Assembly: GCA_977017575.1 (NCBI GenBank)
Contig: CDRNVI010000203.1
Coordinates: 1-64,000, forward strand
Direction of reading: 5' to 3'
From: Paramoeba atlantica
Taxonomy: Eukaryota > Protista > Discosea
Length of the DNA stretch: 64,000 nucleotides
The notes beneath the pieces were generated by a model. The model was not told the origin of the DNA and made no database searches. It worked only from the letters and a program-made list of their open reading frames with translations. Positions 216 to 9,264 of this stretch are shown in pieces; the first letter of the stretch is position 1, and each line of letters begins with the position of its first letter. The position numbers were made by a program, and so were the translations under genes.

Positions 216-1324
216 GCTGTTTTCCAACAAAGAAAATTATAAAAAAATAATTTTGTTGTTGTCAAATACGATCTTTTAAAATATAAAATTTTTTTTATCG
301 TTATAAATTTTATTCCGACATAAATTTGTTGGAAAAGTAACAGTAAAAAGTTGTTAATGAAAAAAAAATAAATTCATTAACAACAACGTTGATGAAAAAT
401 AACAATCAACGCTGTTAAATTTCCAACAAAATAATGTCAGAAAAAAATTTCTGCCGAAATAATTTAGCTGATTAAATTTTTATCACGACAAAAATATTTT
501 TTTGTTGATCAATTAAATCGTTATTAACAAAAAAGTTATAACGCTGTTAATTTTCCAACATAAAAATTTTTTATCTCTCAAAAAATATTTTTTGATGTTC
601 AAAGTTATCGTTTGATAACAAAAAAGTTATAACGCTGTAACTTTTCCAACAAAAAAAATTTTTTTTCGTGTTAAAAATTATTTTTGATCAATAAAAATTA
701 TTTTCGATGTTCAAATTCATCGTTTGATAACAAAAAAGTTATAACGCTGTTAATTTTCCATCAAAAATTATTTTTTTTGCTTCAAAAATTTTTTTTAACA
801 TAAAAATTTATAATGATGATTACAAAATAAGTGTTGCAACTCAAAAAAGTTGTTTAACACTGTTAATTTTCCATCAACATCATAATTTTTATTTAAAAAT
901 TTTAATCAAAATCAATTTTATAAACATTTTTTGTAAAAAAATTAAAATTTTTACTGGAAAATTACGGTGAGATGCATAAAAATTAGATTTAAACATAAAT
1001 TTATGCAAACTACCGTTTAATTTCCAACAAAATTTAAATTTTTTTCATTCAAAAATAGATTTTTTTAATTTTTCGCCGACAAAATTGAAAAAAAATTGAA
1101 TTTTCATTCAAAAAGTTGTAAAATTGAGTCTCAGGATGAAAAAGTGGAAAAAGACCACATTTTATCAATTCGACGCTAAATTAGCAAAAAATTTCAATTT
1201 CTACACCTAAATGACTGTAGAAATTGGTGTTTTCCTACAATTTTGTGGAAACTCCTGACAAACACTGCTAAATTTCCAACAAAAAGTCAATTTGCAGGTG
1301 CTGCCCGTGGATTTTCCAACAAAA
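216..1324 (+). repeat. Degenerate internal sub-repeats, motif (AAC)GCTGTTAA(T)TTTCCA(A/T)CAAAA
   Basis: Copies near 216, 408, 540, 631, 743, 856, 1011, 1261 and 1305, with one inverted copy at ~327-343. Three copies are preceded by TCGTT..TAACAAAAAAGTTATAACG (~517, 608, 719). Present in every unit. Confidence 0.8.
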
Positions 1325-1930
1325 TACTAGCAAAACTACTCAAAATGCTATTTTTCCGGCAGAAAACCGTCAAAATCTGCTTTTTCTGGGCAGGAATGAC
1401 AAAAACGGCCCAAAAAAGGCCCTGTCATTTTGCCCAAAAACGCAGTATTTTTTCCTGTTCTGGCCTGCAAATTAGCGGATGTCCAAGTGCCCCAAAAAAA
1501 GTGACTTGGACTCCGAGCCGACTCGAAAAGTCGTATTTTCCGGCAGAAACGAAAAAATATGCCACATTTTGTCCGACGATTATTTACAACTTTTTCTCGC
1601 ATCCCATCATAGCGATTTTGCGGATCTGCAAGTTGGGAGGGAACCAACTGCATTTTTTGGCCGTTTTGAACCCGTTTTGTAAAAAATCGCATATATAAAC
1701 TCCATAATTTCCCCTCAGAAATCTGCCACTTTTGGACGCCAAAAAGTGTTTTGCAGAATCTCGAGGGCAAAATAGGAGTTTTTTGACCCGATTTTGTGAA
1801 CAAAACTGGCATCAAAAACTATTCCAAATGCTCCAATCCGAATTTCAGCTATTGAACACTAAAAATGCTGAAAATCGCTATTTCGCACTGGAATTCCGCC
1901 AAAACTCCTTTTCAATGCGTATTTTGGGCG
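1240..1930 (+). other. Relatively GC-rich island with long imperfect hairpins (no credible ORF)
   Basis: GGGCAGGAATGACA (1388-1401) pairs fully with TGTCATTTTGCCC-containing 1423-1435 using G.T pairs. A nested rod spans 1674-1806 (GTTTTGT/ACAAAAC, AAAATCG/CGATTTT, AAACTCC/GGAGTTT, CCCTC/GAGGG, TCTGC/GCAGA, CACTTTTGG/CCAAAAAGTG). Confidence 0.6.
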
Positions 1931-2288: not shown

Positions 2289-2631
2289 AAAAATTTTTTT
2301 AAAATCACTAGTTGAAACCATCGTCTATGGTTTCTTTTGTTAATGATCAATGTTTTCATTTCATTCATAACATTTTCACGTTAACTTCGTTCAACTAACT
2401 TGAATTTTATTAAAATTATGATTCATAAAATAATTTTTTCATTGCTAAAAATAAAACCGCAATGGAAATTATTATGAAACAAGTTTTAATAATTCAAACT
2501 TAAGTTTGAACTCGAGTTATAAAATTTTAATAACATTAATATATACTTTTAAATAACTTCTATAATTAATTCAAAAGAGAATTTATAATTAAGAACTTAT
2601 AAAACTATATTTAATGATTTAAAACTTAATA

Positions 2632-2747
2632 ACTTGTTGTAATGTTTTCAATATAATAATATATTTACGATATATTATCTTCTTTGTTCCAAAATCAGAT
2701 GTTGATTATCGTACATTCTTATTACATGAAAACATAACAACATAAAG
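2632..2747 (-). ncRNA. Candidate hairpin RNA A1 (conserved scaffold, variable basal stem)
   Basis: TGTTGTAATGTTTTCA pairs with TGAAAACATAACAACA. The scaffold is the reverse complement of that in A2/A3, and a G.T pair appears on the - strand. Also in units 3, 5, 9, 12 and 13. Confidence 0.55.
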
Positions 2748-2800
2748 AATACAATAGGCACTCCTTACATTTAAATGCCCTTAATATAATTTATCGATAT

Positions 2801-2840
2801 ATTTAATTACACAAATAATTTAAAATATAATTTATAAAAT
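2801..2840. promoter_or_regulatory. Conserved AT-rich motif AT(T/A)TAATTAC(A/AC)AAATAAT(T/A)TAAAATAT; possible promoter element
   Basis: Retained within otherwise diverged spacers at 2801 (A), 7417 and 7790 (B) and 16690 (C). It lies 66-79 nt upstream of a + strand hairpin each time. Promoter function is inference only. Confidence 0.35.
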
Positions 2841-2879
2841 ATTAATAAAGTTCATGTAAAATGTAAGAAGTTACCCTAG

Positions 2880-3023
2880 TTTTCCTGGTATTGTGAGTAT
2901 GTTTTCATGTAATAAACATGTACGATAATCAACATCTGATTTTGACTCAAAGCAGAGTAATCATCGTTAAATATCGTTACAAAGTTATTACAAATAAAAC
3001 ATAAATCACTAATAACAGGAAAA
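2880..3023 (+). ncRNA. Candidate hairpin RNA A2
   Basis: TTTTCCTGGTATTGTGAGTATGTTTT pairs with AAAACATAAATCACTAATAACAGGAAAA. Inner helices are TGTAATAA/TTATTACA, TGTACGATA/TATCGTTACA, TGATT/AATCA and ACTC/GAGT. Confidence 0.62.
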
Positions 3024-3235
3024 TATTAAATACAAAAATATTTAATAAACTTCGATGCAAAAAAGCATCTTGACAATCTCTGTGTTTTTGTTAAAAAAAA
3101 TAGCGTAAAACTACAAAACCATATATATAAAATGAAAAGTGTATAAAAAAGAAAAGCATACACTTTGATACATTCAATCGAAAAATATCTCAATCATGTA
3201 TCATTAATTTTAGTATATATGGTAGGAGTTTTACC

Positions 3236-3375
3236 TTTACAGTGCTATTAGTCATGTTTTCATGTAATAAGAATGTACGATAATCAACATCTGATTTGCA
3301 CTCAAAGTAGAGTAATCATCGTTAAATATCAGTACAAAGTCATTACAAGAAAACTAAAGATTAAAGCACTGTAAA
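3236..3375 (+). ncRNA. Candidate hairpin RNA A3
   Basis: TTTACAGTGCTATTAGTCATGTTTTC pairs with GAAAACTAAAGATTAAAGCACTGTAAA, with a G.T pair on the + strand; same scaffold. Confidence 0.62.
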
Positions 3376-3376
3376 A

Positions 3377-3521
3377 TTGCACTAAGATTTCCTTCAGAAA
3401 TTCAAGTGCAAATATCCGCCCAACTTATAAAATATAAGTGGCGTCTATATATATTTTTTTATCGAAAAAAACGATAAATAAATAAAGATCATGATAAGAT
3501 TTCTACGAAATTCAATCATGA
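3377..3521 (+). other. Cluster of short hairpins, including two of the AA-GATTTC-loop-GAAATT-CA family
   Basis: TTGCACT/AGTGCAA (3377-3411), CGCC..ACTTATA/TATAAGT GGCG (3417-3443), TTTATCG/CGATAAA (~3452-3484) and TCATGAT/ATCATGA (3489-3521). Confidence 0.6.
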
Positions 3522-3693
3522 AGCATACACTATAGTGTATGCAAATTATTACAAAAATAATAATTTTAAAATTTTTTCTTCGAAATTCAAAGAAGAATTT
3601 ATTCGAAAAAAATATAAATTTTAATGTTTTCGTGTTTAACTACAACTTAAATTTATATATATTTCGTTAAATTAAGAGAATAATTAAACGAAA

Positions 3694-4062
3694 CTGTTAC
3701 TCGGCAAAAATAAGGGAATTTTTGAGTAACAGACCGTTCAAATTGAAAACAAAAAAACAATTTGCACGGCAATTCTTGGGGTTTTTACGCCTCACGGCTT
3801 CGTGATTGGACTAAAGAGCAGGAGCGAGAGCAAGAAAGTTTGCAGGGGTAGTTGAGTTAGCTATTCCCGGTGGAAGCTAACCTCGATTCTTTAGTCTTTA
3901 GTTGTGGTAATTTGGGATAGTGAAGTAAAATTTTTAAAGTTCACTATCGACAATTACTATTCTCTTTCATCTTTTGGCGTGCATTGCTAATTGATCCCAA
4001 TAGACAATCACATTCAGAAATGATCGTTGCTATCCCTATATGTATGTAAAATATCATACATA
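3694..4062 (+). ncRNA. Unassigned multi-branched structured RNA candidate
   Basis: CTGTTACTC/GAGTAACAG (3694-3732). TGCACGGCAA/TTGGCGTGCA (3763-3983) encloses TCACG/CGTGA, GACTAAAGA/TCTTTAGT, GTTAGCT/AGCTAAC and GGTAATT..GATAGTGAA/TTCACTATC..AATTAC. Two fully compensatory pair changes separate the types. Confidence 0.55.
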
Positions 4063-7000
4063 AGAATCAATAAGATCTATTTCGTCTCCTCTTTCATCCT
4101 TTTAACATAGCAAGACTAATCTATATTATATAATTATTATTCAACTTTTTTAATTATATTTTATCTGCTTGAACACCATAGTTCGATAAAAAATAAATAA
4201 AAAGATGAATAAATAACTAAAAAATAAAGATAGACAAGAACAAGAATAGTTTAGTTTAATTCCGTGTTAAATCCTCAATCCTTAAGTCGGATTTGTCACT
4301 CCATATACGATCAAACTTTATTTACTTAAATTTTTACAAAGATAGTAAAATTAAAAGTATAAAGATGATCTAGCTCACCAGTTTTATTTAAATTAAAATC
4401 TTACACAATGATTTTATATTTATAAACTACTCGCTTCCATCGACCCTCGACTTTGTTGAAGTTTGAGTGTTTGAGTTTACGATATTAAAGAGAAAAAAAA
4501 TATTATTGCGCTCTATTGGTGGGGCTTTCGTTAAATTATTAAAAGCTCAACGTCATTGTTCGCGTTTTACGTTACACTCCACAAGCTAAACAAGTGCGTT
4601 CTGCCTTAATAATCACTACCCCTCACCAAAAGGTCGCAATAATATATGTTTTTAGCGTTTAAGATCTGGAGACCATTTTCAAAATAGAAAATGTCAATCG
4701 CTTTTTTCTTACGCAAGTACGTCAAAAAAATCGTTTTTCTCCATGAGCTAAAACGAGTTAGTTCGATCGGGTGTTTTTTGATGCTTTTTTTGGATCGCAG
4801 CTTCAACAAAAAAAAATTTCCACTGCTGTTTTCCAACAAAGAAAATTATAAAAAAATAATTTTGTTGTTGTCAAATACGATCTTTTAAAATATAAAATTT
4901 TTTTTATCGTTATAAATTTTATTCCAACATAAATTTGTTGGAAAAGTAACAGTAAAAAGTTGTTAATGAAAAAAAATAAATTCATTAACAACAACGTTGA
5001 TGAAAAATAACAATCAACGCTGTTAAATTTCCAACAAAATAATGTCAGAAAAAAATTTCTGCCGAAATAATTTAGCTGATTAAATTTTTATCACGACAAA
5101 AATATTTTTTTGTTGATCAATTAAATCGTTATTAACAAAAAAGTTATAACGCTGTTAATTTTCCAACATAAAAATTTTTTATCTCTCAAAAAATATTTTT
5201 TGATGTTCAAAGTTATCGTTTGATAACAAAAAAGTTATAACGCTGTAACTTTTCCAACAAAAAAATTTTTTTTCGTGTTAAAAATTATTTTTGATCAATA
5301 AAAATTATTTTCGATGTTCAAATTCATCGTTTGATAACAAAAAAGTTATAACGCTGTTAATTTTCCATCAAAAATTATTTTTTTTGCTTCAAAAATTTTT
5401 TTTAACATAAAAATTTATGATGATGATTACAAAACCAGTGTTGCAACTCAAAAAAGTTGTTTAACACTGTGAATTTTCCATCAACATCATAATTTTTATT
5501 TAAAAATTTTAATCAAAATCAATTTTATAAACATTTTTTGTAAAAAAATTAAAATTTTTACTGGAAAATTACGGTGAGATGCATAAAAATTAGATTTAAA
5601 CATAAATTTATGCAAACTACCGTTTAATTTCCAACAAAATTTAAATTTTTTTCATTCAAAAATAGATTTTTTTAATTTTTCGCTGACAAAATTGAAAAAA
5701 AATTGAATTTTCATTCAAAAAGTTGTAAAATTGAGTCTCAGGATGAAAAAGTGGAAAAAGACCACATTTTATCAATTCGACGCTAAATTAGCAAAAAATT
5801 TCAATTTCTACACCTAAATGACTGTAGAAATTGGTGTTTTCCTACAATTTTGTGGAAATCCCTGACAAACACTGCTAAATTTCCAACAAAAAGTCAATTT
5901 GCAGGTGCTGCCCGTGGATTTTCCAACAAAATACTAGCAAAACTACTCAAAATGCTATTTTTCCGGCAGAAAACCGTCAAAATCTGCTTTTTCTGGGCAG
6001 GAATGACAAAAACGGCCCAAAAAAGGCCCTGTCATTTTGCCCAAAAACGCAGTATTTTTTCCTGTTCTGGCCTGCAAATTAGCGGATGTCCAAGTGCCCC
6101 AAAAAAAGTGACTTGCACTCCGAGCCGACTCGAAAAGTCGTATTTTCCGGCAGAAACGAAAAAATATGCCACATTTTGTCCGACGATTATTTACAACTTT
6201 TTCTCGCATCCCATCATAGCGATTTTGCGGATCTGCAGGTTGGGAGGGAGCCAACTGCATTTTTTGGCCGTTTTGAACCCGTTTTGTAAAAAATCGCATA
6301 TATAAACTCCTTAATTTCCCCTCAGAAATCTGCCACTTTTGGAGACCAAAAAGTGTTTTGCAGAATCTAAAGTGGAAAATAGGAGTTTTTTGACCCGATT
6401 TTGTGAACAAAACTGGCATCAAAAACTATTCCAAATGCTCCAATCCGAATTTCAGCTATTGAACACTAAAAATGCTGAAAATCGCTATTTCGCACTGGAA
6501 TTCCGCCAAAACTCCTTTTCAATGCGTATTTTGGGCGAGAAAACCGTCGATTTTATAATTTTTAAACTTTTTTTTGTATAATTTATCATTTTTAGCGCGG
6601 ATTTCTATAATTTCTCGCATAATTTATTAGTTTTATAGCGTTGTAGTTAAAATTTTCATAATTTTATCATCAAAGTCATCATTTTTCTATAATTTCAAAC
6701 AAAATTATTAAAAAAAATGTTGTCTCAGACGAAAAAATTGCATGAAAGTTGTTAAACAACACTAAAACTAAAAAAATATCCCGCAGAAATTAAAAAACCG
6801 TGATAAAAATTTATAAATTCAAAAGAAAAATTTAAAAATCTTAAAAATTTATGATGAAATCATCTTCTTTGTACCAAAATCAGATGTAAACATCAAAAAA
6901 TTTTTTTAAAATCACTAGTTGAAACCATCGTCTATGGTTTCTTTTGTTAATGATCAATGTTTTCATTTCATTCATAACATTTTCACGTTAACTTCGTTCA

Positions 7001-7237
7001 ACTAACTTGAATTTTATTAAAATTATGATTCATAAAATAATTTTTTCATTGCTAAAAATAGAATCGCAATGGAAATTATTATGAAACAAGTTTTAATAAT
7101 TCAAACTTAAGTTTGAACTCGAGTTATAAAATTTTATAAATTTAAATTATAATTTCAATCATTTCTATAATTAATTCAATAGAGAATTTATAATTATGAA
7201 ACTATGAAACTATATTTAATGATTTAAAATTTAATAA

Positions 7238-7369
7238 TCCCTGTATGTGTTCTTTATGTTTTCAATGTCTGATGATATGTTCGATATATCATCTTCTTTG
7301 TACCAAAATCAGATGTTGATTATCGTACATTCTTATTACATGAAAACAAAAAAGAACATACAACAGGGA
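7238..7369 (-). ncRNA. Candidate hairpin RNA B1
   Basis: TCCCTGTATGTGTTCTTTATGTTTTCA pairs with TGAAAACAAAAAAGAACATACAACAGGGA around the scaffold; also in unit 11 (+41173). Confidence 0.6.
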
Positions 7370-7492
7370 AATACTAAGATACTTTAATAACTATTATGTA
7401 TATAAATTGATCGAATATATAATTACAAAAATAATTTAAAATATTCAATAATATTAAATATATATAGTTATTAAAGTGATCTTGTATCCTAG

Positions 7493-7635
7493 TTCATGTC
7501 GATTCTTTTAGGTTTTCATGTAATAAGAATGTACGATAATCAACATCTGATTTTGACTCAAAGTAGAGTAATCATCGTTAAATATCAGTACAAAACTTAT
7601 TACAAAGAAAACAACTAATAAAGCATCGACATGAA
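7493..7635 (+). ncRNA. Candidate hairpin RNA B2
   Basis: TTCATGTCGAT/ATCGACATGAA forms a perfect 11-bp base, then CTTTT-AG/CTAATAAAG and GTTTTC/GAAAAC; same scaffold. Confidence 0.62.
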
Positions 7636-7855
7636 ATTCTGCTAAGATTTCTACGAAATTCAAGCAGAAAATTACACTAAGATTTCCTATAGAAATTCAA
7701 GTGTAAACAAACATTAGTATTGCAAAAACAATCTATGTTTGTATTAAAAAAAACACATCTAGAACAATATAATATAAATCAATAAAAATATTTAATTACA
7801 AAAATAATATAAAATATAATTTATAAATTTATTATTAAAATGATCTAGATGAACA

Positions 7856-7998
7856 TATTCCTGGGTATTCTAATGTGGTTTTCATGTAATAAACATGTAC
7901 GATAATCAACATCTGATTTTGACTCAAAGTAGAGTAATCATCGTTAAATATCGTATAAAGTTTATTAATAATAAAACCACAAAGGAATCCAAGGAATA
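7856..7998 (+). ncRNA. Candidate hairpin RNA B3
   Basis: TATTCCTGGGTATTCTAATGTGGTTTT pairs with AAAACCACAAAGGAATCCAAGGAATA; same scaffold. Confidence 0.6.
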
Positions 7999-9264
7999 AT
8001 TATGCTAAGATTTATACTAAATTCAAGCATAAGATTGCACTAAGATTTCCTTCAGAAATTCAAGTGCAAATATCCGCTCAACTTATAAAATATAAGTGGC
8101 GTCTATATATTTAATCATTACAAAAATAATGAATTAAATAGATCATGATAAGATTTTTTACAAAAATTCAATCATGAAGCATACACTATAGTGTATGCAA
8201 ATTATTACAAAAATAATAATTTTAAAATTTTTTCTTCGAAATTCAAAGAAGAATTTATTCGAAAAAAATATAAATTTTAATGTTTACGTGTTTAACTACA
8301 ACTTAAATTTATATATATTTCGTTAAATTAAGAGAATAATTAAACGAAACTGTTACTCGGCAAAAATAAGGGAATTTTTGAGTAACAGACCGTTCAAATT
8401 GAAAACAAAAAAACAATTTGCACGGCAATTCTTGGGGTTTTTACGCCTCACGGCTTCGTGATTGGACTAAAGAGCAGGAGCGAGAGCAAGAAAGTTTGCA
8501 GGGGTAGTTGAGTTAGCTATTCCCGGTGGTAGCTAACCTCGATTCCTTAGTCTTTAGTTGTGATAATTTGGGATAGCGAAGTAAAATTTTTAAAGTTCGC
8601 TATCGACAATTATTGTTCTCTTTCATCTTTTGGCGTGCATTGCTAATTGATCCCAATAGACAATCACATTCAGAAATGATCGTTGCTATCCCTATATGTA
8701 TGTAAAATATCATACATAAGAATCAATAAGATCTATTTCGTCTCCTCTTTTTTCTTTTAAAATAGCAGGACTAATCTATATTATATAGTTATTATTCAAC
8801 TTTTTTAATTATATTTTATCTGCTTGAACACCATAGTTCGATAAAAAATAAATAAAAAGATGAATAAATAACTAAAAAATAAAGATAGACAAGAACAAGA
8901 ATAGTTTAGTTTAATTCCGTGTTAAATCCTCAATCCTTAAGTCGGATTTGTCACTCCATATACGATCAAACTTTATTTACTTAAATTTTTACAAAGATAG
9001 TAAAATTAAAAGTATAAAGATGATCTAGCTCACCAGTTTTATTTAAATTAAAATCTTACACAATGATTTTATATTTATAAACTACTCGCTTCCATCGACC
9101 CTCGACTTTGTTGAAGTTTGAGTGTTTGAGTTTACGATATTAAAGAGAAAAAAAATATTATTGCGCTCTATTGGTGGGGCTTTCGTTAAATTATTAAAAG
9201 CTCAACGTCATTGTTCGCGTTTTACGTTACACTCCACAAGCTAAACAAGTGCGTTCTGCCTTAA

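Follow-up and report, generated by a model that had tools for sequence, protein, structure and literature searches.

A gene-free 4.6-kb tandem repeat in a Paramoeba–Perkinsela holobiont assembly keeps pairing potential beyond chance in a 1.5-kb hairpin zone

Pairing potential is kept well beyond chance in one zone, at ~2480–4060 of the first unit, of a tandem repeat found in the assembly of Paramoeba atlantica. As pairing is retained to this degree, either a constraint on the single-strand fold or hairpin-directed repair acts on the zone. We favor the former. Selection would keep the elements of the zone able to fold as a single strand, whichever molecule carries the fold, and we give this reading a probability of about 0.6. 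The stem-loops would then serve for recognition or initiation and would not be parts of one long RNA. The original prediction held that the differences between unit types are repeatedly compensatory, and this observation is confirmed as statistically sound, but for the 1.5-kb zone only. The present analysis adds permutation and slid-partner controls, an unconstrained rest of the unit and a wobble test with mixed counts. Loop polarity, transition bias, an analysis of the array junctions and a test for CSB-3 are also new here.

Organization of the array

The window is the whole stretch of DNA that was analyzed, 64,000 nucleotides of contig C203, and all positions refer to it unless a contig is named. 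It is filled from 1 to 64,000 by a gene-free tandem array of 14 head-to-tail units on the + strand. The array extends past the window, up to C203:116186. Unit anchors were located 25 times across 116 kb of C203, with further ones on C233 and C245–C248, and the array is essentially one assembly locus (C203) plus fragments. Its base composition is 27% G+C, and skews of A over T and of C over G run uniformly along the + strand. Internal sub-repeats of 91/112 nt lie at 490–877 (+ strand) of the unit. A-tract phasing near 10.2 bp was also detected and could arise as a harmonic of the 112-nt sub-repeat.

There are three deep types of unit, A (4607–4609 bp), B (4655–4656 bp) and C (4538–4539 bp), which are 170–280 substitutions apart. 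The three are 94–96% identical outside 2620–3490 and largely non-homologous inside it. We read 32 complete units from C203, C233 and C245–C248, which gave 23 distinct sequences. The units are strongly homogenized and recombining, and the variation within a type is almost entirely due to recombination between types rather than to new mutation. The array therefore provides three independent lineages only. A fourth lineage is a paralogue of window 3480–4040 on contig C162, which is 84–92% identical and sits in another tandem repeat, of 14.9 kb. This paralogue and types A, B and C are the lineages compared below, and each count rests on few events because there are only these four.

A search of the array indicated no genes. 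No tRNA gene is present, the ORFs of the array have zero relatives and zero Pfam matches, and coding potential is absent under code 1 and code 4, with no longer ORF under the mitochondrial code. In 20 kb of the array no Rfam family was matched at the gathering score. At E≤5, one unit gave only chance-level hits to bacterial sRNAs and one miRNA model, all unrelated, and the Rfam models of trypanosomatid mitochondrial rRNA and of self-cleaving ribozymes were unmatched by the repeat. We considered ACCTCGAT at 3881, which resembles a peptidyl-transferase sequence, as a piece of mitochondrial rRNA. It fails the published ACCTCGNTGT pattern and is not conserved in C162, and rRNA models find nothing, so this candidate was rejected. 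A metagenome search with two 22-mers from the invariant block gave no hit.

Compensatory changes in stem pairs

Pairs were predicted from type A alone and every pair was then classified across the lineages; covariation therefore could not shape the structure. In the block 3480–4060, compared among A, B, C and C162, eight pairs are doubly compensated, against 0.85–1.36 expected when column contents are permuted globally or locally (in 100- or 40-column blocks; P≤0.0005). Controls with slid partners gave no doubly compensated pair in this block in six of six cases. A covariance model of the hairpins at 3904–4023 found 22 copies with four distinct sequences. These hairpins comprise 41 pairs with 97.6% of the cells paired, and both sides are changed at seven pairs, compared with 1.8±1.1 after shuffling (0/500) and with none in slid controls.

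The signal is also seen over the whole unit when the count is restricted to well-aligned columns, which we define as those with ≥80% local identity: four doubles were counted against 0.4–0.5 expected (P about 0.001). The uncorrected unit-wide figure, 15–20 doubles against 2 expected, is inflated because the hypervariable cassette described below is poorly aligned. Column-wise pair counts in the cassette were discarded as unreliable, since A, B and C are not homologous there and many pairs that look "broken" or "double" do not compare orthologous positions.

Among A, B and C, clean compensations fall at 2550/2601, 3057/3066, 3420/3440, 3503/3507, 3907/3957 and 3921/3943, and three further ones lie in the hairpin at 3460–3476, where the alignment is weaker. 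The C162 copy adds 3632/3640, 3908/3956, 3980/4010, 3981/4009 and 3985/4006. Eight of nine clean compensations among the three types are transitions on both sides of the pair (P about 3e-4), while transitions and transversions stand at 46:39 among substitutions overall. At 3420/3440 a T.G intermediate is still present in type B. Such a bias, together with this intermediate, would fit a stepwise passage through wobble pairs.

The remaining ~3 kb of the unit behaves differently. Outside ~2480–4060, single changes in stems number 20, of which 18 disrupt the pair and two give wobbles; no pair is compensated, and the one pair altered on both sides is broken. Inside the zone, too, about 11 single changes fall at MFE-predicted pairs. 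The original prediction allowed that most stem substitutions might prove disruptive once counted systematically. They do so outside the zone, but in the block 3480–4060 disruptive single changes are depleted (10 against ~27–31 expected). The description of a satellite-like repeat under structural constraint is not supported for the repeat as a whole. With its long head-to-tail array and non-coding unit, the C203 array has the form of a satellite, and the constraint applies to the ~1.5-kb zone but not to the other ~3 kb of the unit.

Every base pair cited by the original prediction is present as written, and two of its examples come from outside the zone. The TTCCGACA/TGTTGGAA helix at 313–334 contains G317.T in A units only; types B and C carry TTCCAACA, which gives an A-T pair. 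The GTCCAAGT/ACTTGGAC hairpin at 1481–1511 is intact in A, and it is broken by a single change in B and by two in C, a damage that the original prediction had conceded.

Anatomy of the hairpin zone

The hairpin zone of the first unit (2480–4060) contains some 20–30 stem-loops and is the only part of the unit with compensatory differences between types. Unusual foldability as such is not confined to it, as the segment 1200–1890 outside the zone has a folding z of -8.5. Several hairpin families share one design, in which the apical part is fixed and the outer stems differ between copies yet stay complementary.

The hypervariable cassette at 2632–3376, largely non-homologous among A, B and C, forms a nested palindrome in each type (folding z -14.6, -14.2 and -14.8). 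It contains a family of long hairpins. The near-invariant arm of this family, ~43 nt long, has an inverted copy at 2664–2736 (- strand), which together with 2898–2970 makes up a 73-nt inverted repeat of 84%. Two direct copies of the long-hairpin core, at 2898–3005 and 3254–3358 (both + strand), each possess a self-complementary basal stem, and the two stems are different. Of the eight family members in the three types, five have + and three - orientation. From copy to copy the basal stems show no sequence relationship; the basal arms of one hairpin pair with each other at a mean of -12.9 kcal/mol, compared with -5.7±2.9 kcal/mol when arms are swapped between copies. A small hairpin with an A6 loop lies at 3054–3069, in which G3057-C3066 of type A is A16855-T16864 in type C.

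The second family consists of mini-hairpins of 33–35 nt with a 7-bp variable stem, a fixed asymmetric AA/CA bubble and a 6-bp apical stem. The apical stem opens with an invariant G.T, and its closing pair covaries (C-G, A-T, T-A). Both the bubble and the G.T are kept in all seven variants while the stems covary, and the family is confined to the array repeat and C162. One member lies at 3377–3411 (+ strand), with a C.A opposition in the stem of type C. A further member at 3489–3521 (+ strand) is closed by 3503/3507, where types A and C have C-G and type B has T-A. Between them is a hairpin at 3417–3443 that holds the series named in the original prediction, C3420-G3440 in A, T8078.G8098 in B and T17219-A17242 in C. 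The next hairpin, at 3452–3484, has an A7 loop, and in type B it differs on both sides of 3460/3476, 3463/3473 and 3464/3472, all by transitions, in a region where the local alignment identity is only about 70%.

From 3489 to 4023 the zone is a run of discrete stem-loops. Seven of them, at 3523–3542, 3543–3566, 3584–3599, 3612–3658, 3662–3693, 3694–3732 and 3734–3769, are almost invariant in A, B, C and C162. The one at 3523–3542 is a perfect 20-nt palindrome. About 200 nt of the 3489–4023 run are identical in all four lineages. The one compensated pair within 3523–3769, 3632/3640, is that of C162.

Two further hairpins lie at 3904–4023. The two-tier hairpin at 3904–3960 shows three compensated pairs and one wobble change: G3907-C3957 of type A is A8563-T8613 in B, 3908/3956 is compensated in C162, T3921-A3943 of type A is C8577-G8599 in B and likewise C-G in C, so that A stands against the rest at 3921/3943, and 3922/3942 changes from G-C to G.T in C162. 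The hairpin at 3967–4023 contains the C162 compensations at 3980/4010, 3981/4009 and 3985/4006. At its pair 3969/4021 both partners differ in C162, giving T.G, and type C has an A.C opposition.

Polarity of the hairpin loops

The hairpin loops of the zone are 57–63% A and 18–21% T on the + strand, whichever strand is folded. Among type A loops, 16 contain a run of A4 or longer on the + strand and two a run of T4 or longer. Loops are predicted at 3058–3065, 3464–3472, 3551–3558 and 3745–3758, among others. Oligo-A loops on the + strand are thus the one clear polarity of the zone. It fits either a + strand RNA with A-rich loops or a - strand DNA with oligo-T loops. Part of this polarity reflects the shared descent of modules in one orientation.

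Location of the repeat

The assembly is that of a holobiont, comprising a Paramoeba-type amoeba and a Perkinsela-type kinetoplastid. The array has three junctions, each into unrelated DNA, at C203:116186, C233:26195 and C129:13371. One partner, on C203, is TE-rich DNA, and contig C207 carries the same DNA at 100% identity without the array. Another is a bacterial infB-rbfA-truB stretch of 55% G+C, and the third is the interior of the amoeba mitochondrial cob on C129. Since the three partners are unrelated, the simplest reading is that the junctions are chimeric joins of a very abundant molecule, and this molecule might be Perkinsela-type kinetoplast DNA (kDNA). It is possible that the C203 junction with nuclear-type transposons is genuine, which would place the repeat in a nucleus.

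Two apparent links to organellar genes were dismissed. A mitochondrial linkage through cox1 and cob leads to contigs C95–C135, which are the amoeba's own mtDNA (15–26% G+C, TGA codons). The sole array link to these contigs, a 1.76-kb piece that interrupts cob on C129, is probably a chimera. What looked like a pre-edited cryptogene in the T-poor flank on C203 proved to be a repeat dispersed over large contigs in dozens of copies. No link of the family formed by C162 and the array to any other sequence was found.

The kDNA of Perkinsela is AT-rich and carries just six protein genes in about 120 Mb (PMC6334171, PMC4669381). The guide RNA and rRNA genes of Perkinsela are not firmly located (PMC4669381, PMC7859406), and Perkinsela kDNA is therefore the leading candidate for the source of the repeat. 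A conserved region shared by all classes and a variable region specific to each class, a trait of minicircle type, are found in A, B and C, and the block also occurs in C162. However, the assignment fails its one available sequence test because CSB-3 (GGGGTTGGTGTA) is absent, with 0 matches at ≤2 mismatches on both strands of the 64 kb. The nearest stretch is GGGGTTTTTACG at 3778. CSB-3 is kept even by the guide-RNA molecules of Trypanoplasma (PMC9679448). That the repeat would be the main component of a ~100-Mb, almost gene-free Perkinsela-type kDNA, with the covarying stem-loops as its working parts, is a speculative reading to which we assign a low probability. If it were true, the stem-loops might be hairpins for priming or packaging of single-stranded DNA, or precursors of the unfound guide or ribosomal RNA pieces.

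Carrier of the fold and rival explanations

The carrier of the fold is a separate matter. The single-stranded DNA of the repeat itself is our tentative choice, at somewhat less than even odds. Its stem-loops might form when a very abundant, probably organellar (Perkinsela-type kinetoplast) DNA unwinds, and the oligo-T loops of the - strand would resemble stem-loop origins used by organellar primases or RNA polymerases. A transcript, with oligo-A loops if it came from the + strand, stands next in probability, and the remainder goes to a DNA-level process that needs no function. The folding of single-stranded DNA, named as the alternative in the original prediction, is thus rated at least as likely as RNA. 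The original prediction itself preferred transcription from the + strand into a long structured RNA, with selection on the RNA fold. Compensations that pass through G.U-compatible transitions would agree with it, as would A-rich loops on the + strand, which many structured RNAs have, and the invariant G.T pairs at 3498/3512 and 3703/3723. Folded locally, the block is also slightly better on the + strand (-142 vs -137 kcal/mol), and several G-C pairs became G.T in C162. The block alone gives seven G.T against three A.C, but six of these seven G.T are changes of the C162 copy, mostly C to T, some of them in a decaying stretch. The G.T pairs cited in the original prediction do fall on the + strand, but the systematic counts are mixed, and beyond that block tally they do not favor the + strand: isolated mismatches in long helices across the unit, read on the + strand, are G.T in 5 cases and A.C in 19, 1×1 mismatches flanked by Watson-Crick pairs are G.T once and A.C four times, and the comparison of the A and C cassettes gives two + strand wobbles against four A.C oppositions. 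Wobble-preserving single changes among A, B and C are fewer than by chance (3–6 vs 10–13), and the mutation spectrum of the three types is strand-symmetric. The two strands of 3370–4060 fold about equally well (-183.6 vs -180.6 kcal/mol, z -7.9 vs -7.7), and over the whole unit the - strand is more stable than the + strand (-1153 vs -1021 kcal/mol). Three of the eight long hairpins are oppositely oriented, the changes outside the zone are disruptive, and zero Rfam families match, even at E≤5. Mixed wobble counts, equal folding of the strands, hairpins in both orientations and the lack of an Rfam match leave a long structured + strand RNA unsupported, and we consider it unlikely.

The main alternative to selection on the fold is a hairpin-templated process at the DNA level without any function, which seems to us slightly less probable than the + strand RNA. 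On this reading the modules are palindromes such as accumulate in bloated organelle or satellite DNA, and one arm could be copied onto the other by fold-back (hairpin-templated) synthesis or template-switch repair, so that the arms would stay complementary without selection. The unusual foldability of the whole unit, including 1200–1890, would be in line with this, as would the nested and mirrored palindromes of the cassettes, with the 43-nt arm in both orientations, the perfect palindrome at 3523–3542, the equal folding of both strands and the strong homogenization and recombination of the units. Basal stems that are unrelated between copies are also expected from copied flanks. However, arm copying should erase both the AA/CA bubble and the G.T that family 2 keeps, and templated copying does not predict transition-biased compensation with a wobble intermediate. 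Disruptive changes also persist in palindromes outside the zone, and a stretch of about 200 nt in the block is shared without change by two repeats that otherwise differ. A quite improbable proposal is that the variable arms of the cassettes are guide RNA genes of kinetoplastid U-insertion/deletion editing, or encode other small guide RNAs, with the conserved inverted repeats as cassette borders like those in Trypanosoma brucei minicircles. The layout would suit it, with a conserved backbone and a variable part and with inserts of variable sequence enclosed by conserved inverted arms, and so would the A-rich 3' arms. In related prokinetoplastids the molecules that carry guide RNAs combine a conserved with a variable part (PMC7859406), and in Perkinsela the guide RNA genes have yet to be placed with certainty (PMC4669381). 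Yet the published Perkinsela candidates and their flanks are absent from the repeat and C162, a genome search with one variable arm at ≤2 mismatches gave no further match, three cassette types are far too few for about 900 editing sites, and CSB-3 is absent. Chance or ascertainment, in which a few compensated pairs were picked from many substitutions, is the least credible account. The disruptive nature of nearly all stem changes outside the zone, the selective G.T argument and the presence of four lineages only speak for it, but it is rejected by the permutation, slid-partner and shuffle controls on pairs that were predicted from one sequence.

Comparison with known systems

The cassettes of T. 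brucei minicircles are flanked by 18-bp inverted repeats. Trypanoplasma borreli possesses long, repeat-bearing guide-RNA molecules (PMC9679448). Like such kinetoplast guide-RNA DNA, the array is AT-rich and apparently very abundant, its host would be of Perkinsela type with an unexplained kDNA content, and its classes share a backbone and differ in a variable region between inverted arms. Unlike that DNA, the array has neither CSB-3 nor the published Perkinsela guide candidates, its 4.6-kb units form a head-to-tail array of >116 kb with three classes only, and its conserved parts are hairpin apices while its variable parts are stems.

In vertebrate mitochondrial OriL and the single-strand initiation hairpins of phages, a stable stem with a T-rich loop is formed by one DNA strand. 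The stem-loops of the array resemble them in that structure is conserved over sequence, and they would act only on an unwound strand. They differ in number, with dozens of stem-loops per unit instead of one, and their organelle location and any role with a primase or polymerase are putative. Hairpin repeats of inflated organelle genomes include the palindromes of Volvox, the double-hairpin elements of fungal mitochondria and the GC clusters of yeast. These too are short hairpin-forming modules whose apices are related and whose stems differ, set in AT-rich DNA that is non-coding. The modules of the array, by contrast, occupy fixed positions in the unit rather than being dispersed, keep conserved bubbles and are compensated with a bias to transitions.

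Satellite DNAs with dyad symmetry have been proposed to form non-B DNA at centromeres. The array is similar as a long gene-free tandem array with dense dyad symmetries beside transposon-rich DNA (C203), but its unit is complex and 4.6 kb long, it is one assembly locus plus fragments, and all its junctions are suspect. Transcribed satellites with self-cleaving ribozymes occur in newts, schistosomes and cave crickets, and they share with the array a tandem repeat with a conserved fold, although no ribozyme or other Rfam family is matched in the array unit. Integron attC sites are found in bacteria, in association with an integrase and gene cassettes. As in attC, a folded single DNA strand would be recognized and stems vary around conserved unpaired bases; the array differs in having no integrase and no gene cassettes.

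Implications

The segment 3370–4060 is a defined probe region for localization, for a transcript and for single-strand mapping. If the repeat were a nuclear satellite, it would be a clear example of compensation that preserves dyad symmetries. If instead it belongs to the kDNA of Perkinsela, the zone would give the first indication at sequence level that constraint acts on some of the "excess" DNA of this organelle. The kDNA reading, if true, would explain what the excess DNA is made of and why a part of it is under selection.

Related repeats and junctions of the array

Contig C162 (C162:1-29546) carries another tandem repeat that lacks genes and has a unit length of 14,868 bp. This repeat holds a diverged copy of window 3480-4040, and it also carries window 4240-4451 at 100% identity and an 81% copy of window 4236-4368. 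No other match to the C162 repeat was found in the genome.

At the edge of the array on C203, the contig of the window, lies an element (L016:2200-2810, corresponding to C203:116200-116810) that spans roughly 600 nt, is poor in T and rich in purines, and resembles an unedited kinetoplastid cryptogene. This identity was ruled out, as dozens of copies of 83-96% identity on large contigs mark the element as a dispersed repeat.

Pieces of the array also adjoin DNA of other kinds. On C129, an amoeba mitochondrial contig, the region C129:12663-15131 contains cob and, starting 150 nt after the cob reading frame, 1.76 kb of repeat sequence that is 99% identical to window 4915-6673; this frame is 12 residues short compared with the other cob copies. 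The piece is either a chimera or a genuine insertion. On C233, the array directly abuts 55% G+C DNA near C233:26195, and a stretch coding for bacterial-type IF-2, RbfA, and TruB is found at C233:30013-33439 (L021:13-3439). The 55% G+C stretch is a contaminant or an associated bacterium, and its join with the repeat is most likely the product of a chimeric read.

Sequence features within the repeat unit

An island of higher G+C at window 1180-1818 contains two open frames, one of 172 codons and, on the other strand, one of 156 codons. As neither relatives nor a Pfam match was found for them, the two frames are probably an effect of composition.

Within the invariant block, short stretches similar to the conserved blocks of minicircles occur at window 3778-3789 (GGGGTT...), 3868-3875 (CCCGGTGG), and 3987-3994 (GGCGTGCA). 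Their identity as CSB-1, CSB-2, and CSB-3 was rejected due to the wrong order and insufficient length.

In the one unit analyzed (window 4060-8715), A-runs and T-runs of at least 4 nt are phased at ~10.0-10.2 bp, with the top spectral peak at 15-17 times the median. This phasing could point to an intrinsic bend in the DNA, like that of kinetoplast minicircles, or it could be a mere harmonic of the 112-nt sub-repeat.

In each unit, the first 1.3 kb contains 7-8 copies of the octamer TTCCAACA, all of them on the + strand (window 222, 421, 553, 644, 1022, 1274, and 1314, with the same offsets in all units). Most copies lie in the context AATTTTCCAACAAAA. The copies of TTCCAACA may represent a binding-site array.
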